A stretch of 64,000 nt of DNA. Origin: Bugula neritina (taxonomy: Eukaryota; Animalia; Bryozoa). The notes under the pieces were generated by a model. The model was not told where the DNA came from. It did not search any database and saw only the letters and a program-made list of their open reading frames with translations. The DNA lies in the NCBI GenBank assembly GCA_964035545.1, contig OZ037765.1, positions 33,045,504-33,109,503 on the forward strand, given 5' to 3'. A program made the position numbers and the translations under genes. Positions 18,691-61,981 of this stretch are shown piece after piece (positions within the stretch are counted from its first letter, which is position 1; each line of letters starts with the position of its first letter).

Positions 18691-18957
18691 ATAAATAGAT
18701 TCTATGTTCTCCATTTAACATTTCTTTAGACTTTATTTACCAATTCATTTTTTGTAAGTGATAACACAATAGTATGGATAAAAGTTTCAATATTGAGAGT
18801 TAGAGTAAGAATAATTATTATAAACAATTTAGAATAGCTGATGCCATCTTGAGTATACACTGTTGTTTCCTATCTATTCACACTCTTGGTATATTATTGT
18901 GATAGCTATCTTTGATATGAAAATACTAAACAATATTCAATTTATGTTCTCTTGTAG

Positions 18958-23347: not shown

Positions 23348-23579
23348 AGAGTCTCAGAATCTGGTTTAGACATTCTGGAGAGAATCCTGTAGACATGGAA
23401 GATGTTTGCTGGGCTGCAACCAAATCATATACTTTGAGTGAAGTGAAGACTCAAGTTGGGAGTTATCAACTCACTCACCTCAAGTTAGAGAAGAAAATTC
23501 CTAAGAATATAGGAGAGATTGCTTCACATGCTGTTTGTTTGGTATTCCGTAATATGACTGACAAGGAGAGTCTGAATAA
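23348..23579 (+). CDS. N-terminal coding exon of the Roco-caspase gene
   Basis: Open frame from acceptor CCAG (23347) to donor AA|GTGAGT, ending in phase 2 as the LRR cassettes require. Confidence 0.65.
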
Positions 23580-26500
23580 GTGAGTATTTAGTTGAGTATA
23601 TCTGAGTCAGACAACTCACACATATTGTATGATTTCAAGATGAATATGTTGATGACTCCTAAAAAGTTGTACTGTACATTATGTAATGCGATATTAAGAG
23701 TTGAATACACAGCAATGATATGATGTATATATTGTAACAATAACTTATATTCTTCTCTGATTGTATGTCTTTATATTGTATTTTTATATTACAGTATTAG
23801 TCAGCTGACTCAGTTAGAGGAACTAGACATAGGATACAATCCTCTCAACACAGTACCAGATGTTGTGTCATCACTCACATCACTCAAACAGTTGTATATG
23901 AGTGGATGTAGAATATCCAGTCTACCTGAGAGGTTTGTGTGTCACATGTTTATTATTTCTTCTTAACATCATACCCATCTCCCTTTAAAATATATTTATA
24001 CATAACTATTAGTATATAAGATATGTACAGGTTATAAATGTGTAGGTAAAAATTTGTATACCCACCTTAAGGTTTTGATAAAATACAATGAGATGGAAAA
24101 GGTGGAGTGCATCATGAATTGAAAAGCCACCCTCTCTCATGAAAAAGTGAATTATAATTTCGTTTTACTACTGTATTGAAATACCACAGTACTCCCTAGC
24201 TATAATGTAAAATAATATTGCTAAGCATTTTGCTAAAGGTTTCATCTGGAAAGAATACTTATAGATATAGAATATTATTGAAGAAAACAATGGTCTATAG
24301 GGGTTTGAGCTCGACAAAGGCTATTGATGATGTTAGGAAGACTATACCCAGTCATAATTGCTCCTGTGCCTCATGTGAATAAGTCCATAGCCCCATTTAA
24401 CAAAAACTCCTTTCATCAGGGATTTTCTCACAGGGATGATGATTAAATTTGCATCAGTTTTATTTTTAAATAAAATAATAGAATTATTTGTTATATAAAG
24501 CGATAACAGCTACTAGTGATATAATTTGTTACTGATCACTATCAAATCAAATGGTATTCATTATTAAATGAAACAAGTTAAGGTAAAATATCATGAGGAT
24601 TGCAAAAATATTTTTGTTTTATTGTTAGAATTTTTCAGGACTGTAAACTGCTGCATGATATTTTATTCTCTTCCTGTTGTAAATTTTTATATCATATTTT
24701 TATATTACAGTCTCTCCCAGCTGACTCAGTTAGAGGAACTAGACATAGGATACAATCCTCTCAACACAGTACCAGATGTTGTGTCATCACTGACATCACT
24801 TAAACAGTTGGATATGAGTCACTGTAGAATATCCAGTCTACCTAGGAGGTTTCTGTGTCACATGTTTATTATTTCTTCTTAACATCATTACCATCTCCCT
24901 TTAAATTATATTTATACATAACTATTAGTATATAAGATATGTACAGGTTATAAATGTGTATGTAGGTAGAATTTTGTACCCACCTTAAGGTTTTGATAAA
25001 ATACAATGAGATGGAAAAGGTGGAGTGCATCATGAATTGAAAAGCCACCCTCTCTCATGAAAAAGTGAATTATAATTTTGTTTTACTACTGTATTGAAAT
25101 ACCACAGTACTCTCCGGCTATGATGTAAAATTTTATTGCCACTAAGTATTTTGCTAAAGTTTTCATGTTGAACGAAGACTAGATATAGGATAATATTAAA
25201 GAAAACAGTGGTCTAGAAGCGTTAACCCTGACAAAGGCCATTGGTGATGTTAGGAAGACTACTCAGTCATAATTGCTCTTGTGCGTCATTTAAATAATTC
25301 CTTAGCCCAATTTAACAAATATCCTTCCCACCGGGTTTTTCACAGGGATAGTGACTATAAAGTTGCATGCATTTTACTTCATAAAAAAACAATGAAATCA
25401 CTTGTAATATGAAGTACTAATATCTACTGGTGATATAATTTGTTATTGATCAAATCGCATTCATTTTATTACATGAAACAATTTAAGGTAAAATATCACA
25501 AGGATTGGAAAAAACATTTTTGTTTTGTTGATAGAGTTTTTCAGAACTATAAACTGCTGCATGATATTTCATTATTTTCCTGATGTAAATTTTTATATCA
25601 TATTTTTGTATTACAGTCTTTCCCAGCTGACTCAGTTAGAGATACTATACATACAACGGAATCATCTCAACACAGTACCAGATGTTGTGTCATCACTCAC
25701 ATCACTTAAACAGCTGGATATGAGTTACTGTAGTAGAGTTGGTCTACCTGAGAGGTTTGTGTGTCACATGTTTATTACTACTTCACAACATCACTATTAC
25801 TACTCTGTAACCTATATTTATACACAACTTATATAGTATATATAATATAACATACAGGATACAGAGTATAGCTATAGTTTTTGTACTTAGCCTGAGTTCC
25901 CTGTGTTAGATAAGGAGCTGGTAAAGGTGCAGTGTAAAAATTGGAAAAACTTTAAACCTCTTCAAATGACTATGTGCAGGATGATGAAAGGAGTTGTATT
26001 ACTTATATATGAATATGTAAGATAGTTTACAATAATGTGTAAAGTTTGGAAAAGATACCCTCTTTCTATATGACCAGAAGCTGAATTATAAATTAGGAGT
26101 TGTATTATTTACATACGAATATTTTGTGTAGTTTAGAATAATTGTATGCATTATATGTTATTAGGAATTAAATATACAGCAATAATGTGGTTTATATTTT
26201 ATATATTACCATTAAATTGTCTGTATGCGTAGGGTCACACAACGCGGGTTTTCTGCATGGGGGTCCAAATTTTAGGGCACCTGTTCTGGGAACAACTTGC
26301 CACACAATGCATGGATTGTGGGTGCGGGAGCTCATTGGCTAACGAACTTGGAGTTTAACATTACTGCTCGCCTACAGACATTTGTTTTTTAAATTTACAT
26401 CATCGGCAAAGTGACTTTCCATATTATAAAAGTGGAAATGAAAACTATATGAAACTGTTTTAATTTAGTTCGATAAAAATTAAACCTCGAATTGAAATTA

Positions 26501-29500
26501 AAAAAGTGTGCTTGCTAAATGGTAATTAGCCAATTACATCAAACCTACACAAGCTTTCTGCACTTCCGTCTCAGCATGTTATCTGCATGGGCACCCACAC
26601 ACAACAGCCCATTTTTGAGCTAGATGGGTTAATTCTCCCTGCATGTTGCCAGCAGGGGTCACCCGCGCCGTGTGGCTCTATGCTAAGCTGACTAAGTAGT
26701 TAGTAATAACTATGTCATAACTCATTATTCTTAGCAGTGAATAGAAAAAAGCTGCCTAAAACCAACCAGCAGCTCTGTGCAAAAACTCTTAAAACTTTCA
26801 TAAATTATACTATGCAGACCTGTTTACTCTGAATACTTTGAAACAAAACAGCATCCTAGGTTAAACACGAATATATATTGAAAACATAGTTTAGCATGTA
26901 TTGAACCAGAACTAGTAACATTCAGTCATGACAATATTGTGTGAAAATTTTACAATCTGAAGTGAATCTGTATTATATTTATGGCATTATATCAAGTACT
27001 ATTATCCTGCTTTATTCAGGATGTTATTTTGACTGATACTCAATATTTCCCGAAAATAAAAACATGTGATATTTGACTCATACTCATATAAGTACTGCAT
27101 GTTATACTTATATTGTATGCAACTTTGTTCTCTTCTTATATTCTGTATATCTTTATGTTCTAGTGTGGATCAGCTGACTCAGTTAGAGACACCAGACATA
27201 GTAGACAATAGCCTCAAGACAGCACCAGATGTTGTGTCATCACTTAAACAGTTGAACATGAATAGATGTGGAATATCCAGTCTACCTGAAAGGTTTGTGG
27301 TCGCATGTGTATCACTACTTCACAACGTAATTATTACCTTCCTTTATAATGTATTTATACACAACTTATAGAATATAGAATAAGTACAGGATACAGGATA
27401 TAGCTTTTTATTCAAACTTTTCAGGCTTAGTCTGAGATTCCTGTATTCTACAATGAAACGATAAGGGTGCAGTGTAAATATTTATAGAGCCACCCTCTTT
27501 CTCGACTCTGAATAGAAATATTGTAGTGAATTTTAGTATTGCATTAGTTAGTTATGTTATATTGAAAGGGTAACTCTATGTCGGACTGCCGCCATTCGGC
27601 CGACAGCTTCATGTCGACAGTATCATGTCATCAGGATGGCCTGATCGTGTTGGCCAATGAAACAGGACTGACAATTGATGAGTAGGCGGAGTTTCAAACG
27701 CGTAGTGGAAGCATGTTAGACAGCTTCATCGGCAGAGTGGATCGAGTTCTAGTAATGTGAAGTTGTATGCAAATCACTCTATATTATGTAATCGTGTGTG
27801 TTAATGTTAGTAGTTTTATTTTTGTATAGTTTGTAACAATAAAGTCTATTGTAATTGTGAGAAACCTGGTGAAGTAGCTTTATATAAGTAGACCCACTAA
27901 TTATATAGTGAATCAGAAATTCACTACGGTGGTGGCAGCGGTGGGATCTTTCTTATAATAAGTGCTCCTAGCCAGGGAGTAAAACAATGGCCGACGACGA
28001 GGACGTGCCCGATCAGGAACCAGTAGTGATGGAGGAGGATGACATAGGCGGCCCAGCACTGCCTATGGACAGGTATCACTTACGTGCTCCCATCATTTCA
28101 GGAGAAGAGGATGTGGAGCAATTTATTACTGAGTTTAGTAATGTGGCAGCCATCTGTCGATGGCCTGCCAGGGTGACTCTGATCTAGCTACGGTTGTGTC
28201 TGACAGGGCCGGCTAAACCCTATGGGATAGGCCAAGATGCTGGTGACATATTTGAAGCATTGAGAGCTCGGTTTAGGTTAACCGCTCGAGATGCTCGCGT
28301 GCAGCTTCAAGGACTTAGGAGAAACCCTAAGACTAACTTGCGAGAGCACGCATCCGTAGTCGAACGACTGACACAAGTCGCGTATGGCGACTTGCCTGCT
28401 GATAGTCGACAGAGCTTGGCACTGGATGCATTCCTCCAGTCTAATAATAACCTCGTGCTAAAGTAACACCTGCTGGTAGGCGAGGTTGATACAATGGAGC
28501 GAGCTCTCAGGCTTGAAAATGCCTATTTCCAAGTCGACAGTACATGCTGTACATGTCGCCACGGTGGCAGCCGACGAGCCGACTAGCTTGACCACAAGCT
28601 TGGTTCGCGAGTTGTTAGCCGAAATCAGGGAACTACGCCAGCAGTCGACAGCTGAACGACCTACCAGGCCGCCATTAGTGGTCGACGGCAAGGGGAACCC
28701 CATATGCTGAGGTTATAGTAGTGTTGAGCACTTCATACAAAGTTGCCCCCATGGTAGAGGAAGGCAGTTAAATGGAAACGGCCAATGGTAGACTCCGCCA
28801 ACCGTGGGCCTCGGTTTAACCCTCCGAGGCCAAGGCCCGAACCCAATGGGGTGAGGAGGCCTCCTTCGCCAGAATGGCAAGCCCCCGGGAGAGTTAGCAG
28901 GCCGCAAAGCCCGCCAAAACCTCCGGCTTGGGCACTCAAAAATTGCTTTGAAGGTTTGCCTGATGAGGGGATGTATGACGCGTGGGAGCATGACAGGGAT
29001 TTTCTTCGGTTGCCCACACGAGCGCAGGTCCGAGCATTCACTCGGCCGCCCGTGTTTGAGCAAGTCTGAGATGTAGCCCACTTGCCCACGCGATGTCGAC
29101 GACTCTCTCGCAAACGGAAAGCACAGGTGCATCCCCAACTCCATGCACATGAGGTGTCACCTCAAGAGACGAACCGCTCAGTGAGCGCCCAGCCATATGA
29201 GACCAGCTATTTCCTCCCCGGTAAACTTGCCGAAAAAGCGGCAACTGTTCTATTAGACACTGGGTATACCAGAAATCTTCTGAGCCGGCGTCTGTTAGAC
29301 ACACTCAGTGCCAGGGACAGGGCTAGCCTGGAACCACATGACGGGGAACACGGCACGTTGGCGGACAGGTCGTGTTTTCTTTTCTATGAGGTAGTAGAGT
29401 TTACTGGTAGAGTTCGTGATCAGGTGATCAGTGAGACCTGTATCGTCAGTCAACTCAAGGAGGATGCCATCTTAGGCATGCCATTTCTGAAGCGACACAG

Positions 29501-32500
29501 GTGCCACATTGACTTCAATAAGTCGGCGGTGGTGGTGGCCGGGCGTGAGCTGGCCTGTGTCGACCGATTTTGCCGGCCCTTGGTGGGGGGAGTGCAAGTG
29601 GTACAGCGCTGCGCTGTACCTGGGCACTCTTGGGCTACAGTTTGTTGCAGAGTGAACTGTAGGGAAATCTCCAAGTTGGAAGTGGTGGAAAGTGCACTGG
29701 GGGGCGTCCAGCTTGCTAAGAGTCTGAATAGACTGGATGAGCGGGGGGAGTTCCTAGTCCAGGGTGTGAATCTTTTCACGGAGCCGGTAGACTTGCTGGC
29801 TGAGTCCCTAGTGGGGAAGTTCCACTCTGTAGAGGAGGAGGATGTCGGCCCGGCTCTGGAAACAGCAGACAGAGGCTGGCGGGTTCCCACTAGGGACGGC
29901 AGAGGGCCGGTACCTGAACATGTAGCAGAGTTGTACAGGGATGCCTGTGAAGGCTGTGAGAGTAAGCGGTAACGCCTAGTAATGGCGCAGTTACTTTCTG
30001 AGTACAAGGACGTGTTCAGCTGCGGCGACCATGACATGGGCCGAGCGAAGGCTGTCTGTCATGAGATACCCCTGGCGGCGGGAACGGTGCCCATCCGGCA
30101 GCCGACCCGCCAGTTAGGTCCTGAGAAGGAAAGGGAAGTGAGCCGACAGGTGCAAGACTTTCTGAATCGGGACCTGATTGAACCAGGCCAGCGGGCCTGG
30201 AGTCTTCCAGTTGACCTGGTTTGGAAAAAGGATGGGAGCTGGAGGTTTTGCGTTGACTCTCACAGGCTGAACAGCACGACCATCAAGGACGCTTACCCTC
30301 TTCCTAGGATCGACGAGTCGCTAGATGCCTTAGCTGGTAGCAAGTTCTTTAGTACGTTGGACTTGTTAAGCGGGTATTGGCAGGTGCCCCTGAGTCCTGA
30401 AGCACAAGACAAGGCCGCGTTTATTACGCGGGATGGGCTCTGGAAATGGAAGGTGTTGCCGTTCGGACTTACGTCCGCACCGGCCACCTTCCAGCGACTC
30501 ATGGAGCAGATCCTGAGTGGGCTGCTCTGGAAGACCTTGTTCATCTATCTCGATGACGTCATTGTCACCTCCCCCGACTTCGACACTCATGTCAGTCGGC
30601 TCAGAGAGGTGTTTGACAGACTTCGAGCTGCTGGTCTGAAGCTCAAGCCCTCAAAGTTTGCGTTACTGCAACAAGAGGTTAAGTACCTGGGCCATGTAGT
30701 TGGTCGAGACGGGATCGCCATCGACCCCGAGAAGGTACGGGCTGTGAGGGACTGGGAGATTCCTGGCGACCTCCCTGAATTGCGGGCATTCCTGGGGCTG
30801 GTAGGGTACTATCGTCAGTACATACCGGGTTTTGCAGGAATTCGGCAGCCACTAAACTGGCTGACAGCAAAGGGAGTGCGATGGCATGGAAGCATACAGA
30901 ACAGCAGGCATTTAACCACCTCAAGGATCGCTTGGTATAGGCGCCCATCTTGGCGTACCCTGACCCGGCGAAAGAATACATTTTGGATACTGATGCCAGT
31001 AACCACAATGTGGTGGCTGTGCTGTCTCAGGTCCAAGATGGTCGCGAGGTGGTGGTAGCTTACTATAGTAAGGCCCTGTTGGCGCCTGAGATGAACTACT
31101 GTACAACCAGGAGAGGACCCCTGGCGGTAGTCAAGGCGGTTAAACACTTTAGACCGTATCTGTATGGGTGTACGTTCAGATTACAAACGGATCATGCGTC
31201 TTTGATATGGCTGTGTCGACGGGTTGAATCATCAAGCCAAGTGGCGCGCTGGCTGGAAATCCTGGCAGAGTTTTCTCATCGGATAGATCACCGACCCGGT
31301 AAGAAACACGGCAATGCCGACGGACTCAGCCGCCACCAGGCAAATGGGTGTAAGCAATGCCAAAATATCGAGCGTAAGGATGGTGGACCCCCCCGCTCGG
31401 ACGTTGAGGAACAGTTGGGGAAAGCAGGTGCATATAGCTGGGAAGAAGGACAACTTCGGTCCGAATCCCCTAAGGAGGCTGTTACCAACCTTCACGCAAA
31501 CCCCACGCTGCTCAGGAACGTCAAAGAGCTGTGTCGGCTCCAAGCTACACTACCAGGGGTGGTAGCCGACCTAGTCTGGGCCAAGAAGGAGGGACGGCAG
31601 ACTAGTAAGACCGAGCAGCAGGTGAAGAGTGAAGAGTTTAGGTATTTCTGCAATTGCTGGGACTACCTCTGGCTTAACGGCGAGGGGCTGTTAACGATAA
31701 CGTTAGCAGCCGGCACCAATCGCCGTGAATGAGAGAGGGTAGTCTGTCCGTCTGCTCTGAGGCGGGAGTTGATCATTTACACCCATAGGCAAGCTCATGC
31801 AGGAGCCAGGCGTGTTACTCAGTGTCTTCAACTCCAATGATTTTGGCCCGGTATTACCCGGGATGTCCGACTCCGGGTGCGGAAGTGTGAGGTATGCCAA
31901 GCTAGTCAGCATGGCCGCTCTACTGATACTGCCGGGAGGCGCTGCCACCATGCCGGTCGTCCGTGGCAGGTAGTTGCTGTAGATCTGCTGGGCCCCATGC
32001 CCACGACAGTCAGAGGTAATAACTGGATATTGGTGTTAACTGACCATTTCACGCAGTGGGCTGATGCACTGGCTATTTCAGATGCGTCGGCACCGACGGT
32101 GGCCAGAGCTTTTGATCAGCAGGTGTTTTGCTATTTCGGCTTGTTAGAACAGATCTACTCTGATCAAAGCGCCCAGTTTCAGTCGCAACTCATGAGCAAT
32201 CTTTGTAAAACGTGGGGGTAAACCAGAGTCGGACGACCCCGTACCACCCGCAAGGGAATGGGGTTGTGGAGCGGAACAACCGGATGCTAATTTACTCACG
32301 GAGAAGCCTGCTTATCGGTAACAGTCAGGAAGAGTGGGACTCGGTGTTGCCGCAAATCATGCGAGCTTACCGTAGTACCCCTCACTCCAGTACGCTGGAG
32401 ACCCCTAATTTTCTCAGAGAAACCAGGGTTCCTGAACTTACCATATTCCGGCTCCAGAGAGCAGCGTCTATGATTACGTTAATGAGCTCGTGAAATGCAT

Positions 32501-50500: not shown

Positions 50501-53500
50501 TAAGCTACCTAAACACACTAATCGAGAAAACGCTAATTTTATTTGCTTATTTCCTCAAGATGGAAAAAACTTAAATCATATATATCAAGATCACGTAACT
50601 GGAGATATAACATTAAACGAATTTAAAGACTTTTGTTATAAAGGATAGCAAAAACCTCACGGATTTATTACTTTAGATCTTTCTTCCTCAAAAAATAATG
50701 GAAAGTATAGGCACGGCCTAGACGAGTTTAATATTCTTCAATAAATGAGTGTTTATAAGTTTGGTGAACCATTAGCAAAAGCTAAAAAAGAAAACTATAT
50801 CGAAAGAGTCGTAACTAAAAATGATAACGTTCTTATTCAATCTTTTAGTACAACGATTAATATAGGAATGTTATTGGGATATATAGTAAATAAACCGATA
50901 GAACTAAAATACGCTTTATTAGAATTTCAACATCTTCCAGCTAATAATAATAATCCTTTGTATTGGAAAGATAAAAAATTAACTTTAATTATCGGCGATG
51001 TTAATAACCCTCTCGAACACGATACTATAAAGAATATATAATTCAAGGAGGCGTCGCGCGCGTAAAAATACCTATGTTAGAATATATTGAAGCTGATAAA
51101 AATATTGGATTAGTATTACACTGCTCAAGCGATTATACTAGTCGTAAACCCGATGACGTTACGGTTAATGACGTCCCGCCTATAACTTTACCGTTTGAAT
51201 TAGTGTCGCTGAAACTTTTTTACGTTCATAAATGAGTGTTTATAAATTCGGAGGAAGCGGAAAAACGCAAATAGATACAAAAAAATTCGTTTTAATAAAC
51301 AGTAGTAGTACTCTTACGGGTACGCTAGATATGGGAAAAAATAAAATATCTAGAGTCATCGATCCGGCTGACGATCAAGACGCGGCTACAAAAACATACG
51401 TTAATAATACGAGTATGCCTAAAACATTACACCCCAATAATCAATTAACTATATCAACTGATGACGGACGCGTTATAGATAGCGATTTAAAAGTTGATAA
51501 CGTTGTTACGAAAACTAATGTATCTAATTACGCCGTACCTCTTATACAAAATCCAACCAAAAAATTAACTGTTTCAACTACTTCGGGTAGCGTTGAAGAT
51601 AGTAATTTAAGCGTTACCGATGTTGTTACGACTAATAATATAAATAATTTTGCTATACCAAAAATACACCCGTCGAATGAAAAACTAACCGTTTCAACTA
51701 CTTTAGGTAATATTGCTGATAGTAATTTAAGCGTTAACGATGTTATTACGACTAGTAATATAAATAATTTTGCTATGCCTAAAATACAACCGTCAATCGG
51801 AGGTAAATTATCAATGCTTTCGAGCGAAGGTAATATCGTAGAAACCGGTATAAGCATCGCAGATATTATTACTACTTATAATATAAATAATCACGCTATT
51901 CCTAAATTACAAGGAGCGGTTGGTAATAAATTAGTAATATCAACGAGCAATGGTAATATAATAGAATCTACAGAATCTCAACCCACATTTCCAAGTTATA
52001 ACGTTTAAACACTGTTGCATATTAAATTATTATATTCTCAGCGTATAATAATTTATTACATCAACTCTAAAATTATATTTATCTTCTTTAAAAAACTAGT
52101 AAAATAATTATACTAGTAGTAGGAAGTGGTTGCGTTCTGGGACAACACCCTGACACCGGAGAGTCGAAGACTCGGCGGGGGAAGGGGGTTGTCCCAGAAC
52201 CAACTACTTCCTACTACTACTACTTCACAACGTAATTATTACCTTCCTTTATAATGTATTTATACACAACTTATAGAATATAAAATAATATACAGAATAC
52301 AGAGTAGCTATAGCTTAATATTTAAACTTTTCAGGCTTAGCCTTAGATTCCTGTATTATACAATGAAATGATAAGGGTGCAGTGTAAATATTTATGGAGC
52401 CACCCTCTCTCTTGACTCTGAATAGAAATATGAATGAACTTGCACTTTCCTACAAGATAACCATAAGGAAAAGATTTATTAAATGAGTTTCAATGAGAAT
52501 AAATTGTAACATAGAAGATATGATTATCCATGTGAATTTATTCTATAGCATGGATAGTTCAAATTAATCTGTAGCAACTATTACTTGGTAAGTCGTGAGA
52601 ATGAAACTAATCGTGTTAATTTACTTCATATATAGTACACTTACATTTATATTTTGGGTTTAGTATGTAAACACTTCATAGACACTAGCCTTTAGGGGAG
52701 GGTGAATAATATAAACGCACTACATACTTAAGGATAGCATAACACAACCAATCTAATTAGATGCCACTATCCAGCTGCACTTATCCAATTGCTCTCTCAA
52801 TCCACTATAATTAGTTAGTCTCCTCCTTTGTTCACAGCGTACCTTGGTAGTATAGCAATGTAAACACTAGTAGGCCGAGTGTATTAGAGACGCTAAGCAT
52901 TAGGATAACAGAATAAGGACAAGAGAGTTGTTCTTTCGATATACACAGGAGCACAACTCCTTACAATATTACTGACTCTAAGCATTACTATTGGTTAACA
53001 TTAGCTGTAATGCTTTTGTTACAAGTTGTTCTTGTTTTATAGCAGTTGTAGGTGTTATTACAGTTATACTCTTTTATTAGAGATTAAATATTATCAAGTT
53101 GAGCTATATTATGTTCCTGTAAAATCTGTTTGTAATAAAAACTTGTGTACAAGTGCCTCTCATTATAAAAAGATAATTTCATTGTTTGAAAAGTTTCACT
53201 TTTTTATTTTTTAAAGGCTTACTTTAAAAAATTCAACTTTTTCCAAAAAATCTTTCGAGAATAATTTTTTATATTAAATTCTCTATCTAACAAAAATTAA
53301 AAAGATAATTGAGCTTGAAAATGTTCTATTTACTCAAAAAAAACTCCGTTAAAGCTTCATGAATGCATGTTAGTCCACATCTTTCAAATATATATAATTT
53401 CAAACTTCCCATGGTATTTCTAAAAATTGCAAGAAACTGGACAAGTTGTTTTGGCTGAGTTGTTTTGCCTTTTAGTTTAAGTAAGCCAGGAAAAGAATAC

Positions 53501-56500
53501 ATTTTGTAATTAAGGTTTAATTGTTCAAAATATTTGTAAGCTTCAAATAGAAATTGGTATTTCAATAATTTTTTATTTTGCTTTTCGTTCCAATTTTCTA
53601 TTTCAACAAATATGATGCGATGTAGGTCAAATAAATTTATACGTTAAAAATTACATGCAATAGCTGATACATCTTAAAACATGCAGTTGTGACTTCCTGC
53701 CTATATCTGTATTGCATAAAATACTTTTATTGCATTTAATTTTAGTCTCTTCTCACTATGCATATCTTTATATTACAGTCTCTGTCAGCTGACTCAGTTA
53801 GAGATACTAGACATAGGAGGGAATCCTCTCAACACAGTACCAGATGTGGTGTCATCACTCACATCACTTAAGCAGTTGGATATGAATAGTTGTGATATAT
53901 CCAGTCTACCTGAGAGGTTTCTGTTTATTACTATTTTACAACATTGTTATTGCCTTCTTTTAACATATATTTATACACAGCTTATAATATATAACATAAG
54001 ATGCAGTATATAAAAGTTTAGCTCAAACTTTAGACTCAGTCTAAGTTTGTGGAAAAATGCAATGAGATGTGAAGGGCCGAGTGTAATATGATATAAAAAG
54101 TTATCCTATATCGCTAGATAAAGGTGGATTATTATTTTGTGTCTACTGCACTATTGAAATACTACAGGATCTCAGCTATGTAAAATTCTATACTAGGTAT
54201 TCTGCTAAAGATTTCATGAAGAAAGAATATTAGTTATAGAATATTATTAAGGAAAGCAATGACTTATATGAAGTACTGGTACCATCTCACAACTGTATTT
54301 TGTTACTCACTATTATACATCGAGGGATGGTATTTGTATTACTAAAAGAAAGAATTAGGGATGACAATATATCCTGACAATTTAAAATCCATTTACTGTT
54401 TCATTGATAATTTTTTTACAAACTAGGAATCATTGTTATATAATTCTTTATTCTTTTGCTGTTGTATGCTTTGTATTACAGTCTCTCCCAGCTGACTCAG
54501 TTAGAGAAACTAGACATAGGAAACAATCCTCTTAACACAGTACCAGATGTTGTGTCATCACTCACATCACTTAAAGAGCTGAAGATGAATAGTTGTGGTA
54601 TATTCAGTCTACTTGAAAGGTTTGTGTGTCGCATGTTTATTACTACTTCACAATATCATTATTACCTCACCTAGCAGTATTTATATTCAACTTGTTGTAT
54701 CTAAAATATAATATACAGAACACATAGAGTAGCCATATTCTGACTGTCCTGTGTTATACAATGAAATAGTTAAAAGAGTAGAGTGTAATATAGAAATCCA
54801 CCCTTAAGCATGGTCATGGATTAGAGCCAATGCCAGGATATTATAGTGATAAAATATTCAGTCATTTATAAAAAACACAACATATTTATTCTTGAAGTAT
54901 CACGGTGCCGTATATAAAAGTTTATATTTATGCAAGTATTTTGTTAAGCATTTGATAAACATATATATTCCCTAGAGTTAGGGGTACATGACTATGACTG
55001 TTGGTCACAGGTTAATAAATGATGAAATAGTCATAAGAAGAAGTGTGAAATTAATACCTGCAGTAACAAATAGTTATAGCATCAACTAGCTTTATTTGTC
55101 ACCCATTTTAAAAATAAAAATAACAGCCGACTCCCTAATGTATATACTATGTATAGTAATGTGGACTATATATAGTAATGTATACTATGTATAGTAATGT
55201 ATACTATGTATAGTAATGTATACTATGTATAGTAATGTATACTATGTATAGTAATGTATACTATGTATAGTAATGTATACTATGTATAGTAATGTATACT
55301 ATGTATAGTAATGTATACTATGTATAGTAATGTATACTATGTATAGTGCTGTATAATATGTATAGTAATGTATACTATATATAGTAATGTATACTATGTA
55401 TAGTAATGTATACTATGTATAGTAATGTATACTAAGTATAGTAATGTATACTATGTATAGTAATGTATACTATGTATAGTAATGTATACTATGTATAGTA
55501 ATGTATACTATGTATAGTTATGTATATTATGTATAGTAATGTATACTATGTATAGTAATGTATAATATGTATAGTAATGTATACTAAGTATAGTAATGTA
55601 TACTATGTATAGTAATGTATACATAGTATAGTGATGTATACTATGTATAGTAATGTATAATATGTATAGTAATGTATACTATGTATAGTAATGTATAATA
55701 TGTATAGTAATGTATACTATGTATAGTAATGTATACTATGTATAGTAATGTATACTATGTATAGTAATGTATACTATGTATAGTAATGTATACTATGTAT
55801 AGTAATGTATACTATGTATAGTAATGTATACTATGTATAGTAATGTATACTATGTATAGTAATGTATACTATGTATAGTAATGTATACTATGTATAGTAA
55901 TGTATACTATGTATAGTAATGTATACTATGTATAGTAATGTATACTATGTATAGTAATGTATACTATGTATAGTAATGTATACTATGTATAGTAATGTAT
56001 ACTATGTATAGTAATGTATACTATGTATAGTAATGTATACTATGTATAGCAATGTATACTATGTATAGTAATGTATGTATGATATGTAAAGTGACAAAAT
56101 GATCTACTAAGTCAGTAAACTATTTTATAAACTATGTGTATTTATATAAAGCTTTAACATTGCCTTTTTCTTAAGTAGTATAATTGGCTGAATTGCAAGA
56201 TTAGTTACTGGTGATTAGTTTACTGGCGTATTTGTATTTATATTTATATAGTATTCTGAGCCTCTCAAACCTCCAACATCTGGATATCTCTAATGAAACC
56301 TTTCAGGACAATCAGGAAACTTCACACCAGATCACATGTTTACCAGATAACTTCAGCCAATTATCTAGCTTGATATATCTTAACCTCAGTGGAAATGATA
56401 CCCTAAAAGCTCTAACACCAGAGATAGCTGACATGCCTCTATTAATGTTAATAACTACTCAGGGTTGTGAGTCATTGACTTCACCACCATATGAAGTTTG

Positions 56501-59500
56501 TCAACAAGGAGCAGGTGCCATCAAGCAATACTACACAGACATTAGGAATCATGACAGTGTAGAGGTTTCCATGGTAACTGTTGCTGTCATTGGTCAGACT
56601 ATGTCTGGCAAGACTAGTCTGATTAAGACACTACAGAGTACAGATAGAACCAGAGTTCTTACTCACAGAGTAGATGGTGGACTTGATGATGATACAACTC
56701 CTGTATTCAAAATGGAAGATGTTTGTGTAGATAATGATGTTCTGAGATTCATTGACTTTGGAGGTCATGAAATCTATCAGTCAACATATCGTTTTACGTT
56801 GAAGCCAAATTGTATCCCAGTAGTTGTTGTGAGTCTGGAGCAGTATGAAGACCTGCAGCATGATATTCATGGTAATGAAGCAGTGAGACGACTGTATTTT
56901 GATTGGCTGTCGCATCTCTACCTGACCTATCCTAACCTTGGACCTCCTAAACTGGTTTTGACCCATTTGGATAAAATTGATGAAAGCGAGCTTAAAGAGA
57001 TTGAAGCTAGTTTTTTTTACCACACAAATCATGTTTTTGAAACTATCAGCCACAAAGAAACTGAGAAGTGGAAAGATAACGGTGCCTTTGCAAAAATCAA
57101 GCAATTCAAAAGGGAAACCATCTTCCAAGATGCAGATATTTATAAAGTTGGAAATGTTTACTGTGAAGCTTTCATACAGCTAAAAGAAAGATTGCTGAGA
57201 GAGAGTAAGCAGTTTGTGAAAGCAATACCAACAACCTGGGTAGAAGTTGAACAAACTTTGAAAAAGTTTAACAAAGGTTACATGCCATTCCAAGACATCT
57301 TCAGCCAGTTTTCCAACAGCATTCCGTTAACCGAAAAGCAGCTTGACATCATCCTGACATACATGCACAACTGTGGCATGTTGCTCTGGTACAAAGATGA
57401 TAAGGATTTGCGTCCTTACATATTCTATCACATCCCCACAGTCACTTCACTCCTCCAAGTTCTGTTTACTCATGATGACACAGTTTGGCAGCAGCGTCTG
57501 TCAGCTTTTAGCGGTTCCACTTCAGCTTTTCAGCAACTTCTTACTCTGGATGAATACAAGTCGTTTTCTGAAGAATTTGCTTCAACAGGAATCATGCATG
57601 GTAAGCTGTTCAAACATTTGCTAAGAACTGAAACTGATTTTGTGAAGAGTCCAGCAATGAAAATTGCTGCTAAACTTTTGGAGTCATTCAGAATAATTTA
57701 TTGCTCCACGCTGCAGAATAGAGAGAAGGTTTTTATTGTGCCATACTTCTGTAAAAAGTACCTTAGTGATAGCTTACCTAGCACAGGGAGTTTTGTCACC
57801 TTTCACGCTCAACTACGTTTTGATGGTCTTTCACTACCACAGTATGCCTACCACCAACTTGCTGTGGACATGCTTAATTCTTTTTCTCAAGACTCAGACT
57901 CCATAACAGCCAGAAATAATGGAGCTCGTGTGATGGAAAAAGATCTAAAATATCAGCTGGTACATGACTACAAGTCAGGAATAGTAAACATCCGTGTTTC
58001 CTTTGACCCCAGTCAAGTCTGCAGAGCATGGAAAGTTCTGGTTGACATCACCAACTCTTCTATTAAATACGTTGAGACCAAATGGTGTGCATGTAAAATA
58101 GGATGCAAGTTCTTCTGCCCTCACTGTGGTCTCCAGGAAGACGCCCACCCTTCCAGACGCATGAATCCTTCTTGGGTCCAGTACCATGACAAGAGGTTGA
58201 TGTCTTCTCTTCTTCCATCCGAAGCTAAACACTTCACATGCAAGAAAGATTCTTCTGTACCTGAGTGTCTCCTCAACCCTAGTGAGTATATCATATTATA
58301 ATCAATACTAAAATGATTTTATTATGAATAATTATACTTACGGTTTATATTATGTATGGTTTTATATTTATAATTATCAAAATTTTGAGTATCTTATACT
58401 ACATATTCCTTTTCTGATTGACTATATTCACATTTTTATGCTCATGTATGCCACTAATGTTATACTAATTGAATAAGGTTTTGTTTAGTTTATAATATTC
58501 TATTATGTAATTGTACGTTTCTCCATTATTTCATCTCATTCCTTGCAGTCTCTAGCTTGTCTGAAGAACAGAAAGAAGATCTTTCAAAATTCCTTAGCAA
58601 ATATGAAAAGGCTATTCCTGAAGGTAGACAATCAACTATTCTAATACTATGTTTGTACTTGGTGTTTCCTAGAAGCTAGTTATTTATAATGTGGTGCAAT
58701 TCAAAATTATCTTTAAATGATTGCTATCATTGTTATCATGCTATTTTGTGATAACTAATAGCATTTGATAACTTTAGCGTCCTTATAGTGCTATCTATCC
58801 TATAGTACATTACTGAGCAACATTTTTAGAAAAGACTCAAGTTGAATCTGATGTCGACAGTGATCACTCTGATCATGAAGATTTCTATCTTCCTGGAGAA
58901 GACCACCATGTCAAGATGGAGGTTTCTGCAACCAGAAAAGCAGCAATCAAACGCTTATTCTATTCTAACCAGGTAACCTTGTACAATTTTTTAGTTTATG
59001 TACAATTTAGCCAGCACTAAATCTGTTTTTGCTGATAAAATGGGAGCAATCATTGCATTTACATAAAGGACGTCTTCTAAAATTTCTCAACTGATAATTT
59101 AGAATAAGCATATTAAACTCACGTGTTAATATGCTCAAGAAGTAGAACTGCACAACTGAGACATTTTATGCACTGTGGTCAATAGTTTAACCCTCATTTT
59201 GAGGTAATATTTTAAATGCACATATCTGTGTTTCCCCTAGTAGTGGTTGTTACATAACTCAAAATTGGAGTGGGGAGTTATCCCTATATCATACAACACT
59301 CTGTATTTGGGTCATTTTACTTAATTTAGTACACACTGGAAATCTCCAGTTTTTAGCTATTTTTTGCAATATAGCTCCTAATGAACAAGGGATTTTGCCG
59401 AAAAGTAGTTAAATGTCAATCAACACCCATATATTATCAAGGTTCTTTTCAATTTTAATTGATTTTCCATGTTTTTTCCTAGTTACTCAGTTAATTTTGA

Positions 59501-61981
59501 TTGCAGACTGTTAGGTTTTTTTTGTCACGGTCTGCCATTAAAAGTAGCTGAAAAGTTAAAAAAAACATGGAAAATCAATTGAAATTAAAAAGAACCTTGA
59601 TAATATATGGGTGTTAATTGACATTTAACTAGTTTTGGGCAAAATCCCTTGTTTATTAGCAGCTATATTGCAAAAAAAAGCTAAAAACTGGAGATTTCCA
59701 GTGTATACTAAATTAAGTAAAATGACCCATTTACAAAATATCCAACAGCGAGTGCAAGTGGTTATGTTAGTGCCACAGAAACTAAACTTGTTGAAATACA
59801 ATGGCTATGTCCTCTCAGGTGTACAGAATGAGTGAGACTGTGCGAGGAAGAGCTCTGATTATCAACAACAACCTTTTCCCTGGTTATCCTCAACTCGAAA
59901 GAACAGGTTCTGCGGTGGATGTAGCAAATACTCTAGCAGTACTGAGAGAGCTGGACTTTGAAGTTGATGTGAAACAAGACAGAACTGCTGAGGTGACTAA
60001 ATACCTTTATTATTTTATTTCCTGTAATTGACAGATCTACGAATAGAATTATATTATATGGAATATTATGTGTTGTTCACAGGAAATGCTGAACGATATC
60101 AAAGATGAAACTCAACGCCCTGACCATGAAGACTATGGTATGCATATCACTGTACTCATGTCTCATGGTGCCACCTATGGAGCTTACGGAATGTTATACG
60201 GAGCTGACCTGAAACTTGTAAAACTTCTCGATGTCTTTGATTTGCTTTCATCTGACAACTTCAAGCACATGGCTGGGAAACCTAAAGTGGTGATTTTGCT
60301 GGCTTGTAGAGAAGGTATATTTTGTATTTTATTATATAAGCATGGGCTTTTTTCCATGTTGACTGTTTAAATATCTTGATGTATACATTTTTACATCTAC
60401 ACAAAAAGTAAAAAAATCAATATTTCGATGCTCTTTAGCCTTTAAAATGACTACTAAGTGTATAAGCTAACCTGATGTATTTATGTTTTTTTTAAAAGTG
60501 GTTGCTTGCCAAATACAAATAACTTTGAAATAGTTTACAATTTATGTAACAGAAAGTTTATTAAAACAAAGTAAAGGAGAAACAGCATGATTCTAGAAAA
60601 TATAGTGTAGCCTATACATACATTATTATTTAGAAAAGAGCAAAAATTGGCTTGCAATGAAGTTGCAGCTCTTACAGCACCAACTGCTATATTATGTTAT
60701 GTTATGTAGACAACATTTTGAAGGAAATAGCGATAACAGTGTAAAGTAAGCTATTATCCATCAAACAAACAATAGATCAGCTTCTAAATGAGTTAAAGCT
60801 GTAAGGGTCTGGCCACACACTTGTGAGAATCACACGAAATCGTCTATTTTACCAAGCCTTAAGGGTTCAAACTTTACTAATAATATAAATTCCTTTGTCT
60901 TATGACATATGCAGATATATTTCATGTACCTGTAGAGAAAGTAGACACCAAACCAGAGGAAAGTTCCAATGCACAAAAGGAACGAAAAAACTTTAACATT
61001 GATGATATGTTGATTCTGCAGTCATGTTTTGATGGTAAGTTGATCATTCCATGACTTATTAGGAGGTTCAAAATTGGCAGATGCGCTGCATGATTAGTTT
61101 AGTTACCAAACCTTGTTTGTTCAGAGTGCTTTCTTAAGCGTTTATGCAAGACTATTATTAGTTGTTCCTCTATTTTTATATAGCTGTTCTTCATACTACT
61201 TATATTATAGGTTACATGCCACATTTTTTCAGGTCGTAAATCTATAAGAAGTGTAAACTATGGAAGTCCATTCATCAGAGAGCTGGTTAAAACTCTGTAC
61301 AAACATTCTTCTCATAGAGATCTTGTTTCTCTGTTTGACATCGTGAGTCTCATATTTTAATTTAAATGTGGTGTGTGTCATGTGATGTGTGTCACGTGAT
61401 GTGTGTCATGTGATGTATGTCATGTGATATGTTTCATGTGATGTGTGTGATGTGATGTATGTCACGTGATATGTGTCATGTGATGTGTGTCATGTGGTGT
61501 GTGTCATGTGGTGTGTGTCATGTGATGTGTGTGATGTGATGTGTGTCATGTGATGTGTGTCACGTGATATGTGATGTGATGTGTGTCATATAATGTAAGC
61601 CATGTGCAAGTGAATTTTTTGGATCTTTATTTATATATAAAAGTATCATGAAAATAAATTTTTGTTTAGATAATATACATATAACGTTATTCAACCCTCA
61701 TATACAGCCAATATAAATTATTCAAATTTCCCAGCTGATTGAACTAATGCCTTTCCAACAACTTTTTAAAATTAGAAACAAAGCTATGTATAATCATGGT
61801 GTGTCTATATAAACCATGTTGATCTTTACAGGTACAGGAAAGAGTTAAAAAGGTCACTAAAAAGTTGGCTGAGAAACATAGTCACATTGCACAGCAGGTT
61901 CCAGTTGTAACAAAGACTCTCACTGGCTTGAGAAAGGTTTTATTATTTCCTAAATGCAAAGTCTGTCCAGATACTAAGTAG
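23348..61981 (+). CDS. LRR-ROC-COR-caspase (Roco GTPase-caspase fusion), ~1750 aa if all exons are included
   Basis: Exons: 23348 (first in-exon ATG 23395)-23579; 15 LRR cassettes between 23795 and 54619; 56252-58281; 58549-58623; 58830-58972; 59819-59992; 60083-60314; 60936-61034; 61233-61342; 61832-61981. All are GT-AG with compatible phases. From ATG 23395 the total is 5256 nt, ending in TAG. AATAAA at 62468-62473. Confidence 0.85.
23795..23932 (+). CDS. LRR cassette exon 1 (138 nt)
   Basis: ISQLTQLEELDIGYNPLNTVPDVVSSLTSLKQLYMSGCRISSLPE; TTACAG|...AG|GTTTGT, phase 2-2. Confidence 0.9.
24711..24848 (+). CDS. LRR cassette exon 2 (138 nt)
   Basis: LSQLTQLEELDIGYNPLNTVPDVVSSLTSLKQLDMSHCRISSLPR; phase 2-2. 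Confidence 0.88.
25617..25754 (+). CDS. LRR cassette exon 3 (138 nt)
   Basis: LSQLTQLEILYIQRNHLNTVPDVVSSLTSLKQLDMSYCSRVGLPE; phase 2-2. Confidence 0.85.
26227..26683. mobile_element. MITE-like element in an LRR intron (duplicated at 40991-41447)
   Basis: ~22-bp imperfect TIRs GCGTAGGGTCACACAACGCGGG / CCCGCGCCGTGTGGCTCTATGC; no coding capacity. Confidence 0.6.
27164..27292 (+). CDS. LRR cassette exon 4 (129 nt, degenerate)
   Basis: VDQLTQLETPDIVDNSLKTAPDVVSSLKQLNMNRCGISSLPE; in-frame 9-nt deletion and an L->P change in the LxxLxL core. Confidence 0.65.
27522..34400 (+). mobile_element. Ty3/Gypsy retrotransposon copy 1 (5' LTR, gag-pol pseudogene, extra zinc-finger ORF; no 3' LTR seen)
   Basis: LTR 27522-27928 with terminal inverted repeat TGTAGTGAATTT/AAATTCACTAC. 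tRNA-Leu-type PBS TGGTGGCAGCGGTGGGAT at 27930-27947. gag from 27987, protease LLDTG, RT YLDD, RNase H DTDAS, then integrase. The 3' boundary is approximate. Confidence 0.92.
27987..33195 (+). pseudogene. disrupted gag-pol (PR-RT-RH-IN)
   Basis: ORF fragments 29082-29972, 29982-31058, 30950-31732, 31877-32221 and 32212-32493, separated by stops and frameshifts. Confidence 0.9.
35300..35437 (+). CDS. LRR cassette exon 5 (138 nt)
   Basis: FSQLTQLEILNIGDNTLNTVPDVVSSLTSLKQLKMNRCGISSLPE; phase 2-2. Confidence 0.88.
36210..36347 (+). CDS. LRR cassette exon 6 (138 nt)
   Basis: FSQLTQLEILYIQQNHLNTVPDVVLLLTSLEQLDMSYCSRVGLPE; the donor lies inside a 50-bp palindrome. Confidence 0.75.
36337..36386. repeat. 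perfect 50-bp palindrome at the exon 6 donor / Gypsy-fragment junction
   Basis: CTACCTGAGAGGTTTGTGTGCCACA followed immediately by its exact reverse complement. Confidence 0.95.
36398..38130 (+). mobile_element. Gypsy copy 2, 3' fragment only (duplicate of ~32670-34400)
   Basis: Near-identical to the 3' part of copy 1, including downstream flank; begins abruptly after the palindrome. Confidence 0.9.
37156..38076 (+). CDS. Gypsy-associated extra ORF with C2H2-like zinc fingers (306 aa; copies at 33428-34350 disrupted and 45147-45956)
   Basis: CDECRRTFSTMKQLKIHMPQH and CPCGVHHFYRGAILRHQRNQNC motifs, basic RRQKKRK NLS-like patch, TATATAAA just upstream. Confidence 0.55.
   Translation: MSNAATVLEGKTEAVSADTGTTRYTDSSMGQHVSEERIDMLSDIHLSTVSDQSTTTTNQTVRQVDITELTGGPLELPQALLRRTTWTTRQTKTLIQALIGTDDNRRCDECRRTFSTMKQLKIHMPQHFTVTFCPCGVHHFYRGAILRHQRNQNCYIGHLYKIDADSYTEFRDMILLHVTDPDRRQTPLNQFPATRTTVESVSDADPQPLETTRTTLAPEVTTQPLRILMSRAGRTIEVDSPPLTTTTSFFPSRRQKKRKSPSDRTNKNTIPDQSLLTDVKKLQRRMAYVHIWSGSFHTTSENLQYG
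38550..38687 (+). CDS. LRR cassette exon 7 (138 nt)
   Basis: LSRLTQLEKLDIGSNTLNTVPDVVSSLTSLKQLDMNSCGISSLPE; phase 2-2. Confidence 0.88.
39466..39603 (+). CDS. LRR cassette exon 8 (138 nt)
   Basis: FSQLTQLEKLDIGNNTLNTVPDVVSSLTSLKQLKMNRCGIFSLPE; phase 2-2. Confidence 0.88.
40375..40518 (+). CDS. LRR cassette exon 9 (144 nt)
   Basis: LSQLTQLEILDIQWNHLNTVPDVVLLLTSLKQLNMSDCNVSRVGVPE; in-frame 6-nt insertion. Confidence 0.8.
41934..42062 (+). CDS. LRR cassette exon 10 (129 nt, degenerate; duplicate of exon 4)
   Basis: VDQLTQLETPEIVDNSLKTAPDVVSSLKQLNMNRCGISSLPE. Confidence 0.65.
42293..46010 (+). mobile_element. Gypsy copy 3 (5' LTR, gag, ~3.2 kb pol deletion, integrase 3' end, zinc-finger ORF)
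   Basis: LTR 42293-42698 and PBS 42700-42717, with the same host flank as copy 1. The junction at ~43800 joins the equivalents of 29030 and 32245. Retains the GPY/F motif (PKFVGPY). Confidence 0.92.
46903..47040 (+). CDS. LRR cassette exon 11 (138 nt)
   Basis: LSRLTQLEKLDIGDNTLNTVPDVVSSLTSLKQLKMNRCGISSLPE; not in the ORF track; phase 2-2. Confidence 0.88.
47820..47957 (+). CDS. LRR cassette exon 12 (138 nt)
   Basis: FSQLTQLEELDIGDNTLNTVPDVVSSLTSLKQLDMNSCGISSLPE. Confidence 0.88.
48737..48874 (+). CDS. LRR cassette exon 13 (138 nt, same translation as exon 12)
   Basis: 917-bp tandem duplicate of the exon 12 unit. Confidence 0.85.
49587..49980 (-). pseudogene. viral phospholipase A2 (parvovirus-type / adintovirus PLA2X-like) with N-terminal CxxC..CxxC zinc ribbon; truncated
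   Basis: ELHYPNHNFLGPGT Ca-loop motif. After an in-frame TGA (probable TGG) the frame continues SKPVDRDDAIAMKHDICYALNKD, containing the catalytic HDxxY. Confidence 0.8.
49993..50744 (+). pseudogene. A32/FtsK-like DNA packaging ATPase, frameshifted
   Basis: Walker A GKSGCGKT and Walker B LIIFDD. After a frameshift at the A/G run ~50423-50434 it continues TRGRHSNVVCFYLSQNYF (GRH and Q motifs of A32 ATPases), with one in-frame TAG. Confidence 0.85.
50745..51235 (+). pseudogene. viral hypothetical protein (MSVYKFG start), frameshifted near 51040
   Basis: ORF 50745-51041 continues in another frame (IIQGGVARVKIPML...) to a TGA overlapping the next ATG. Confidence 0.55.
51232..52008 (+). CDS. viral fibre-like repeat protein (258 aa)
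   Basis: LDMGKNKISRVIDPADDQDAATKTYV motif typical of viral tail-fibre/adhesin stalks, followed by ~4.5 tandem 40-41-aa repeats. Confidence 0.6.
   Translation: MSVYKFGGSGKTQIDTKKFVLINSSSTLTGTLDMGKNKISRVIDPADDQDAATKTYVNNTSMPKTLHPNNQLTISTDDGRVIDSDLKVDNVVTKTNVSNYAVPLIQNPTKKLTVSTTSGSVEDSNLSVTDVVTTNNINNFAIPKIHPSNEKLTVSTTLGNIADSNLSVNDVITTSNINNFAMPKIQPSIGGKLSMLSSEGNIVETGISIADIITTYNINNHAIPKLQGAVGNKLVISTSNGNIIESTESQPTFPSYNV
53779..53916 (+). CDS. LRR cassette exon 14 (138 nt)
   Basis: LCQLTQLEILDIGGNPLNTVPDVVSSLTSLKQLDMNSCDISSLPE; not in the ORF track; phase 2-2. Confidence 0.88.
54482..54619 (+). CDS. LRR cassette exon 15 (138 nt)
   Basis: LSQLTQLEKLDIGNNPLNTVPDVVSSLTSLKELKMNSCGIFSLLE; phase 2-2. 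Confidence 0.88.
55138..56076. repeat. 19-bp minisatellite (TATAGTAATGTATACTATG)n
   Basis: Direct tandem copies in the intron before the ROC exon. Confidence 0.96.
56252..58281 (+). CDS. large exon: terminal LRRs + LRR cap + ROC GTPase + COR domain
   Basis: LTSPPYEVCQQGAGAIKQY cap, G1 GQTMSGKTS, G3 DFGGHEIY and G4 VLTHLD (THxD is Roco-typical). COR motifs IPTTW and LTYMHNCGMLLWY, and a C-terminal CPHC motif. Confidence 0.93.
58549..58972 (+). CDS. linker exons 58549-58623 and 58830-58972 joining COR to the caspase
   Basis: ISSLSEEQKEDLSKFLSKYEKAIPE / EKTQVESDVDSDHSDHEDFYLPG...LFYSNQ. Phases 1-1 and 1-0 bridge exactly between the ROC-COR exon and the caspase exons. Confidence 0.78.
59302..59735. 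mobile_element. fold-back / MITE-like element with ~175-bp inverted arms in the intron before the caspase domain
   Basis: 59302-59477 is the near-perfect reverse complement of 59560-59735. Confidence 0.85.
59819..61981 (+). CDS. caspase (peptidase C14A) domain exons: 59819-59992, 60083-60314, 60936-61034, 61233-61342, 61832-61981
   Basis: YRM...RGRALIINN, ERTGSAVD, VLMSHG (catalytic His), GKPKVVILLACRE (catalytic Cys), and p10 motifs DMLILQS, SIRS..GSPFIREL, QVP...TL..RKVLLF. Confidence 0.92.
61366..61590. repeat. 14-bp minisatellite (TGTGATGTGTGTCA)n
   Basis: Tandem copies in the last intron. Confidence 0.92.

Follow-up and report, generated by a model that had tools for sequence, protein, structure and literature searches.

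In bacteria, proteins composed of LRRs, an AP-GTPase and a COR domain are coupled to at least 24 types of effector, including a caspase (Kaur et al. 2021, PMC8195603), and the supplement of that study lists the exact LRR+AP-GTPase(Roc)+COR+caspase architecture in 36-38 entries. Zhang et al. (2008, PMC2575513) reported 'LRRs-caspase' hybrids in amphioxus and suggested that they couple pathogen recognition directly to apoptosis; Roc and COR go unmentioned in that paper. Teng et al. (2024, PMC11378527) proposed brown-algal ROCO proteins as immune receptors and demonstrated alternative splicing for them; Figure 2 of that study presents some forty ROCO architectures from animals. Here, a gene joining LRRs, Roc, COR and a caspase was analysed in a 64-kb window of the bryozoan Bugula neritina (GCA_964035545.1, OZ037765.1), the window being the whole stretch of DNA under study, which is AT-rich and of animal type.

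The window gene has the architecture of the bacterial AP-GTPase conflict systems, namely LRR+AP-GTPase+COR followed by a variable effector. With the bacterial counter-invader proteins (PMC8195603) it shares the domain order, fast-evolving LRRs, the variable C-terminal position of the effector and a predicted immune role; these proteins are known by prediction only, whereas the window gene is spliced and encodes an animal-type caspase with large and small subunits. With the brown-algal ROCO genes (PMC11378527) it shares tandem phase-2 cassette LRR exons, shuffling and diversifying selection, but the algal genes have one LRR per 72-nt exon and no caspase, whereas the window gene has two LRRs per 138-nt exon. 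Vertebrate MFHAS1/MASL1 has an LRR-Roc-COR core without a kinase as well, but carries no effector domain, is single-copy and is linked to TLR signalling. NLR inflammasome and apoptosome receptors follow the same logic of LRR sensor, nucleotide switch and proximity-activated caspase; these receptors, however, are STAND ATPases with an N-terminal effector, and their caspase is usually recruited via death-fold adaptors instead of being fused. The sponge Amphimedon protein XP_019855546.1 (PMC8195603 supplement) combines APGTPase, COR, DED, TRADD-N and caspase in one predicted chain, but differs in its death-fold adaptors between COR and caspase and in having no LRRs listed.

The novelty of the architecture, which the first-pass annotation had offered as potentially new, is in part refuted: it is listed for bacteria (PMC8195603), was approached by the 2008 amphioxus proposal (PMC2575513), and the same fusion was found in Watersipora and Branchiostoma gene models in RefSeq and UniProt. 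In the literature covered, mostly open-access text without figures, neither an experimentally characterised LRR-Roc-COR-caspase protein, nor a described animal Roco-caspase family, nor a paper on the bryozoan family or its expansion was found, in line with the narrower statement of that annotation that it knew of no characterised animal protein of this kind. Branchiostoma models C3XQ16, C3YRK1 and C3ZI91 have the LRR-Roc-COR-caspase architecture of the window gene. Since such models exist in the JGI amphioxus set, the hybrids of 2008 are probably identical to the Branchiostoma models, their Roc-COR having gone unrecognised. Unlike the bryozoan gene, the amphioxus members have QACRG, a short linker without an acidic tether and a Roc-COR outside the bryozoan clade. 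Bryozoan and amphioxus models are named 'MFHAS1 homolog' in the databases, and the family has been hidden because its members are so labelled or are split into two genes. Known already are the architecture and the hypothesis leading from recognition to death; added here are the bryozoan expansion, the diversification of the LRR face, the selection on the caspase, the tether motif and the tree.

Exon structure and splicing of the window gene

The window gene lies on the plus strand and consists of 24 exons and 23 introns, all GT-AG, with every phase matching and no internal stop. Its coding total of 5,324 nt in this 24-exon model gives a protein of ~1,775 aa, and its exons are ordered as a cap, 15 two-LRR cassettes, one Roc-COR exon, two linkers and five caspase exons (Table 1). 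Homology searches were run on single exons or natural database proteins. The in-frame joining from LRRs through Roc and COR into a complete caspase, as proposed by the first-pass annotation, is thus borne out, together with the two small linker exons said to bridge the phases. The span 23348-61981 also stands as the extent of the coding exons, but 23348 is a splice acceptor needing one upstream base and not the gene start, and the first exon ends at 23579. The donor of a tentative upstream exon is in phase 1 and compatible with this acceptor, and an in-frame ATG at 23395 is an alternative start.

Table 1. Coordinates of the window gene and its upstream paralogue (positions in the window)
Feature	Position	Strand	Basis or remark
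Upstream paralogue, last two caspase exons	~234-341, 560-712	+	tblastn, 79% and 57% identity
Candidate upstream exon (tentative): 5' UTR, ATG 19066, seven codons	18958..19087	+	sequence inspection only
N-terminal cap exon, W-F-R-H-S-G motif	23348..23579	+	blastp, phases
LRR cassettes 1-4, two LRRs each	23795-23932, 24711-24848, 25617-25754, 27164-27292	+	phase 2-2; Pfam LRR
LRR cassettes 5-10	35300-35437, 36210-36347, 38550-38687, 39466-39603, 40375-40518, 41934-42062	+	
LRR cassettes 11-15	46903-47040, 47820-47957, 48737-48874, 53779-53916, 54482-54619	+	
Roc-COR exon, 2,030 nt: last LRRs + cap, Roc, COR-A, COR-B with CxxC	56252..58281	+	
Linker exon 1, probable final helix after COR	58549..58623	+	phase 1-1; RNA joints, paralogues, helix in Watersipora model
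Linker exon 2, acidic tether DHSD (58862-58873) and start of caspase domain	58830..58972	+	phase 1-0
Caspase large subunit exon a, first S1 arginine (RTGS 59900)	59819..59992	+	Pfam Peptidase_C14
Caspase large subunit exon b, SHG His and LACRE Cys	60083..60314	+	Pfam; alignment to caspase-2/-1 structures
Inter-subunit linker, candidate site KVD 60938, start of small subunit	60915..61034	+	
Caspase small subunit exon, second S1 arginine (SIR 61241)	61233..61342	+	matches to full-length homologues
Last coding exon and stop	61832..61981	+	AATAAA at 62468

The cap exon is homologous to Watersipora caps (P0190, P0194, P0192 and P0021; blastp E 1e-6 to 5e-4). Three cap-bearing proteins with complete-looking N-termini (P0021, P0190 and P0192) start with M-G-x-x-x-S, one of them also with Cys3, which makes N-myristoylation/palmitoylation probable for these three and suggests membrane targeting of part of the family. 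For the window gene, candidates for a Met-Gly upstream exon were found only inside a Gypsy element, and myristoylation thus has support in the three family members but not in the window gene.

Four runs, each from a different study (one with an RNA-Seq label, three guessed to be RNA), supplied the contigs that were mapped to 56150-62100. Contig depth tracks the exons and falls to zero over 58339-58537, within the first intron after COR. Among the joints listed, ~58280>58557 was found in three runs, 58614>58833 in two, 58969>59816 and 59990>60081 in four each and 61340>61832 in two; joints 60314>60915 and 61034>61233 were absent from this list for the mapped region. One contig of run X2 (depth 149.3) apparently occurs at four successive joints from 58129 to 60086 and apparently reaches from COR to the second caspase exon. 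Most transcript contigs are 85-95% alike to the window gene and therefore derive mainly from paralogues or alleles; some are at least 99% alike, part of these maybe as intronic repeats. Splicing across the COR-linker-caspase fusion is observed for the gene family, not for this exact copy.

These joints bear on whether the locus holds two genes, with the Roco gene terminating at the stop codon 58299-58301 and a stand-alone caspase being translated from an ATG at ~59801. The open reading frame does run on to that stop, an in-frame ATG lies just 5' of the 59819 acceptor, some annotations split such loci and Watersipora stand-alone models are nested among fused ones. In the Bugula neritina assembly copy L001 (12354-13110), single-base frameshifts in the caspase exons, from sequencing error or decay, led the public annotation to split the gene. 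The stop, however, sits within the intron starting at 58282, the spliced joints 58281-58549-58830-59819 that the first-pass annotation had named for a check were seen in family contigs, and the X2 contig and the gap in depth after COR point the same way. Both linker exons and the whole exon layout are moreover kept at two paralogous loci, and the Watersipora models are full-length. The two-gene reading, already largely refuted, was rejected on the RNA joints and the conserved linker exons, and its probability is now close to nil. With independent boundaries, the seven phase matches on the 3' side would arise by chance in about one of 2,000 cases, a rough figure as the boundaries were picked with the frame in view; the RNA joints and the exon layout of the paralogues are the stronger evidence for one gene.

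The LRR array and its mobile DNA

Each 138-nt cassette exon encodes two 23-residue LRRs in phase 2-2, so that the gain, loss or skipping of any cassette leaves the reading frame intact. The cassette copies are 66-100% identical to one another, the exons at 47820 and 48737 being identical, and the array has grown by duplication of a single exon unit (~0.9 kb) and of blocks of up to 5.3 kb that include Gypsy DNA. Twelve exposed concave-face positions were compared with the other 33 codons in the twelve full-length cassettes, giving at least 30 nonsynonymous to 3 synonymous changes on the concave face against 15:9 elsewhere (Fisher p=0.019, for copies that share history). Variability was enriched on the concave face even among non-consensus positions (p=0.0003). 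The concave-face dN/dS is ~2, a value that is by itself not significantly above 1 (binomial p=0.13) and comes from non-independent exon copies. The pattern suggests a ligand-binding surface under pressure to vary, and a similar diversifying pattern of LRR cassettes is described in the brown-algal ROCO study (PMC11378527).

The make-up of the array also raises the question of whether, within a genuine family, this particular copy is decaying or yields only shorter isoforms, its LRRs having multiplied by unstable segmental duplication. Large Gypsy and Polinton-like inserts split the array, ~15 kb of mobile DNA lies in the introns, blocks of 2-5 kb are 88-98% identical, two LRR exons lack three codons and the consensus asparagine, and read mapping was confined to 56150-62100, with the cassette LRR exons outside. 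However, no stop or frameshift occurs in the 24 exons, the splice sites are all canonical, and some contigs are at least 99% alike to the region, although intronic repeats may account for part of these. Decay of this copy is thus considered improbable; as judged from its sequence, the gene is real and intact.

Ty3/Gypsy-type copies lie at ~13300-18700 on the minus strand and at 27550-34500, 36390-38240 and 42330-46120 on the plus strand. They are broken by stops and frameshifts and encode protease, reverse transcriptase, RNase H, integrase and an extra C2H2 zinc-finger ORF. Those Gypsy copies that lie in introns were duplicated along with LRR exons and may have promoted unequal crossing-over. 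A Polinton/adintovirus-like fragment within an LRR intron (49590-53600) contains a truncated A32-type packaging ATPase (49993-50574), a small DUF5679/PLA2-like ORF (49720-49980, minus strand) and a fibre-like ORF (51232-52008) with 120-nt repeats; terminal inverted repeats were looked for in this insert and not found. A 19-nt tandem repeat occupies 55136-56070, just 5' of the Roc-COR exon, and is found in the same place in the paralogous locus L002. The intron 5' of the first caspase exon holds a MITE-like inverted repeat (59300-59720), which is absent from L001 and very abundant in RNA-type runs.

The Roc-COR module, the tether and the caspase

Searched exon by exon, Pfam recognised Roc (E=2e-4) and COR-A (1e-9), and the Roc-COR exon matches Chlorobium Roco (CtRoco), Methanosarcina Roco and LRRK2 by sequence (PDB sequences). 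The G1 (GQTMSGKTS, 56592-56618), G3 (DFGG, 56754-56765) and G4 (THLD, 56961-56972) motifs are intact at the places first assigned to them and near-invariant in the family alignment. The AlphaFold model of the Roc-COR exon as a monomer has a pLDDT of 87.5 and a pTM of 0.88, and in a Foldseek search it gave a whole-length match, with LRRK1 (E 9e-22) and CtRoco LRR-Roc-COR (3e-19) as hits. Roc is immediately followed by COR according to both Pfam and Foldseek, which places the protein among the Roco proteins, with a predicted GTP-binding function. Relative to the paralogue at L002, dN/dS is 0.33 for Roc and 0.39 for COR. The central module is therefore a Roc-COR GTPase in place of the NACHT/NB-ARC domain of NLR/STAND receptors, as the first-pass annotation had stated; the protein may be NLR-like in its working, yet it is not an NLR.

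Pfam Peptidase_C14 was found on separate caspase exons (3e-8 and 2e-12); the small-subunit exons were unrecognised by Pfam one by one and were confirmed through matches to full-length homologues. The caspase announced as complete, with p20 and p10, SHG and ACR, does contain all of these, including the His-Cys dyad and both subunits (SHG at 60161-60169), but its pentapeptide is LACRE (60299-60313), not QACxG; the fold was modelled for the Watersipora homologue P0033. Both S1-pocket arginines are kept and are equivalent by motif to the caspase-3 positions. The S1 glutamine is replaced in both Bugula-type paralogues examined too, by L or V, L002 having VACRS, and the corresponding pentapeptide is QACSG or QACGG in Watersipora and QACRG in amphioxus. 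The protein is thus a Roco member and a caspase-family member with a deviant pentapeptide. Compared with L002, the large subunit has a dN/dS of 0.28 (p=8e-7 for a deficit of nonsynonymous relative to synonymous differences per site), and by this comparison the caspase is under purifying selection despite LACRE for QACRG. The nearest structure was uninformative as to caspase class: one exon gave caspase-2/1, whole domains of homologues caspase-3 and a word-based search a caspase-4-like result.

The change from the QACSG of Watersipora and the QACRG of amphioxus to LACRE and VACRS could also mean that the caspase of the Bugula subfamily is weak or non-catalytic, serving as a scaffold or as a cFLIP-like regulator of other caspases. 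Little probability is given to this, as purifying selection has preserved the His, the Cys and both arginines, Drosophila Dronc is active without the glutamine (PFCRG) and cuts after Asp and Glu, and E at the fifth pentapeptide position lies within the stated consensus (PMC2180229). Because Dronc without the glutamine cuts after Glu and Asp, altered specificity would be likelier than a dead enzyme.

In the P0033 model, a helix after COR is followed by ~30 disordered residues and by the caspase with a disordered inter-subunit linker. The tether carries the motif D/E-[VLIH]-S-D across the family, and D/E-x-S-D is present in the tether of all 11 Watersipora fused models that properly include it (11/11); P0011 is without the motif. 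This D/E-x-S-D is a plausible self-cleavage site, or equally a putative CK2 site. In L002 (4263-4418, 5216-5250), VACRS goes together with a tether motif that ends in Glu (ISE), not Asp, a single case that would fit a shift toward Glu cleavage upon loss of the S1 glutamine. Some Watersipora members are altered, P0046 having a degenerate P-loop and others lacking the second S1 arginine motif (set P0046, P0192, P0049 and P0194), suggesting that they are sensor/helper or decoy subtypes.

Proposed working and origin of the fusion

The best reading, in which we have moderate confidence, is that of an intracellular immune receptor which works without an adaptor and whose own caspase is activated by proximity, cleaves itself and is released. 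The concave face of the ~30-LRR horseshoe would bind a ligand that is foreign or signals damage, as the selection pattern suggests, and binding, probably with receptor clustering on a repetitive ligand or membrane, would shift the nucleotide or oligomer state of Roc-COR as in other Roco proteins. Since the caspase would sit on a flexible acidic tether of ~35 residues, two caspase domains could dimerise in the manner of an initiator caspase. The dimerised caspases would then cut the inter-subunit linker and the D/E-x-S-D tether, and the freed protease would trigger cell death or an immune signal, with GTP turnover as a possible threshold or timer. Lineage-specific expansion with tandem copies speaks for such a receptor, as does, by analogy, the amphioxus Roc-COR scaffold, which swaps effectors like the bacterial counter-invader systems. 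Against it stand the replacement of the S1 glutamine by leucine, a concave-face ratio that is not above 1 alone and the largely paralogous contigs.

The single-chain, adaptor-free receptor of the first-pass annotation keeps the support of one gene, a Roco fold, a selected caspase and a receptor-like LRR surface, but its switch, in which a ligand drives COR dimerisation and thereby turns the caspase on, is unsupported as stated. CtRoco, the best-studied Roco protein, is a dimer without nucleotide or with GDP and a monomer with GTP (PMC5714945), and because GTP monomerises CtRoco, this step is uncertain. The same behaviour would suit a release of inhibition, in which the resting COR dimer parts the caspases or the LRRs clamp them until the caspase is freed by GTP-driven monomerisation or by a host or pathogen protease that cuts the exposed acidic tether; the retention of D/E-x-S-D in a disordered tether is also in keeping with this. 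However, a freed monomeric caspase must still dimerise, as is established for initiator caspases, and a CK2 phosphorylation site might explain the motif just as well; release of inhibition is regarded as unlikely.

Bryozoans live in colonies, and a bacterial symbiont is present in Bugula. The same machine could therefore serve colony self/non-self recognition or symbiont control, with polymorphic LRRs reading an allele-specific partner and the caspase killing at the contact zone. Rapid cassette turnover fits either role, and run X2 is labelled as a symbiont metagenome. However, the model has no signal peptide or membrane helix, so that allorecognition would need an intracellular ligand, and comparable expansions occur in the solitary amphioxus. 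Such a use of the protein is accorded a small but appreciable probability.

Among named proteins, Bugula neritina KAF6026298 is the nearest (82%) and is encoded by a locus with an identical exon layout, and the whole fusion is found in Watersipora subatra RefSeq models. With the Roc-COR exon, 84 clusters were found at E <1e-30 among 50%-identity representatives. A same-strand paralogue ends at window position 712, so the genes are in tandem; its dN/dS against the window gene is 0.41. The DNA 3' of this paralogue (3239-4307) matches the DNA 3' of the window gene (62944-64000) at 85%. Between the two paralogues lie exons of a Ras-family small GTPase (4894-6462, minus strand; Pfam Ras E=2e-9 for 6238-6462).

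A Roc-COR tree was inferred under LG+G4 from 35 rows, long-branch rows being left out; rows P0003, P0004 and P0022 were taken as bryozoan and P0120 as amphioxus from their placement. The bryozoan Roc-COR sequences fall into one clade (100/100), separate from the expanded amphioxus clade, and a single clade of bryozoan and amphioxus Roc-COR was rejected (AU p=0.014). In the caspase tree, which was poorly sampled and without caspase-2, -3, -8 and -9 references, the constraint to a common clade gave p=0.18, a value compatible with one fusion or with two. The nearest Roc-COR relatives of known origin are animal (with one bacterial-like row, in one tree), and the caspase-bearing amphioxus members are interspersed with members that bear a death, GT4 or OTU effector. 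For this limited sampling, independent fusion in bryozoans and amphioxus would be the simpler reading.

Taken further, and only tentatively, cheilostome bryozoans may have evolved on their own, and multiplied greatly, a GTPase-gated, single-chain, inflammasome-like receptor, with a variable repertoire from duplicated and perhaps alternatively spliced two-LRR cassettes, an N-terminal myristoyl anchor and a self-cleaving caspase of altered specificity as output. If the origins are independent, the same solution was reached separately in bacteria, amphioxus and bryozoans. The protein would then be the simplest system for asking how Roc-COR controls its C-terminal enzyme, which is an open question for LRRK2, as a Roco protein with a caspase output would offer a sharp and easily assayed readout of dimer versus monomer and of GDP versus GTP. 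For comparative immunology, it would represent a class of intracellular receptors in which a GTPase takes the place of the NLR ATPase and which has expanded in a phylum with an almost unstudied immune system.

Other animal Roco proteins vary in their effectors. In Branchiostoma, one Roc-COR clade (P0101, P0124 and P0156-P0187) swaps caspase, death domain, GT4 glycosyltransferase and OTU, and the Lingula Roco protein P0117 has a weak CARD match.
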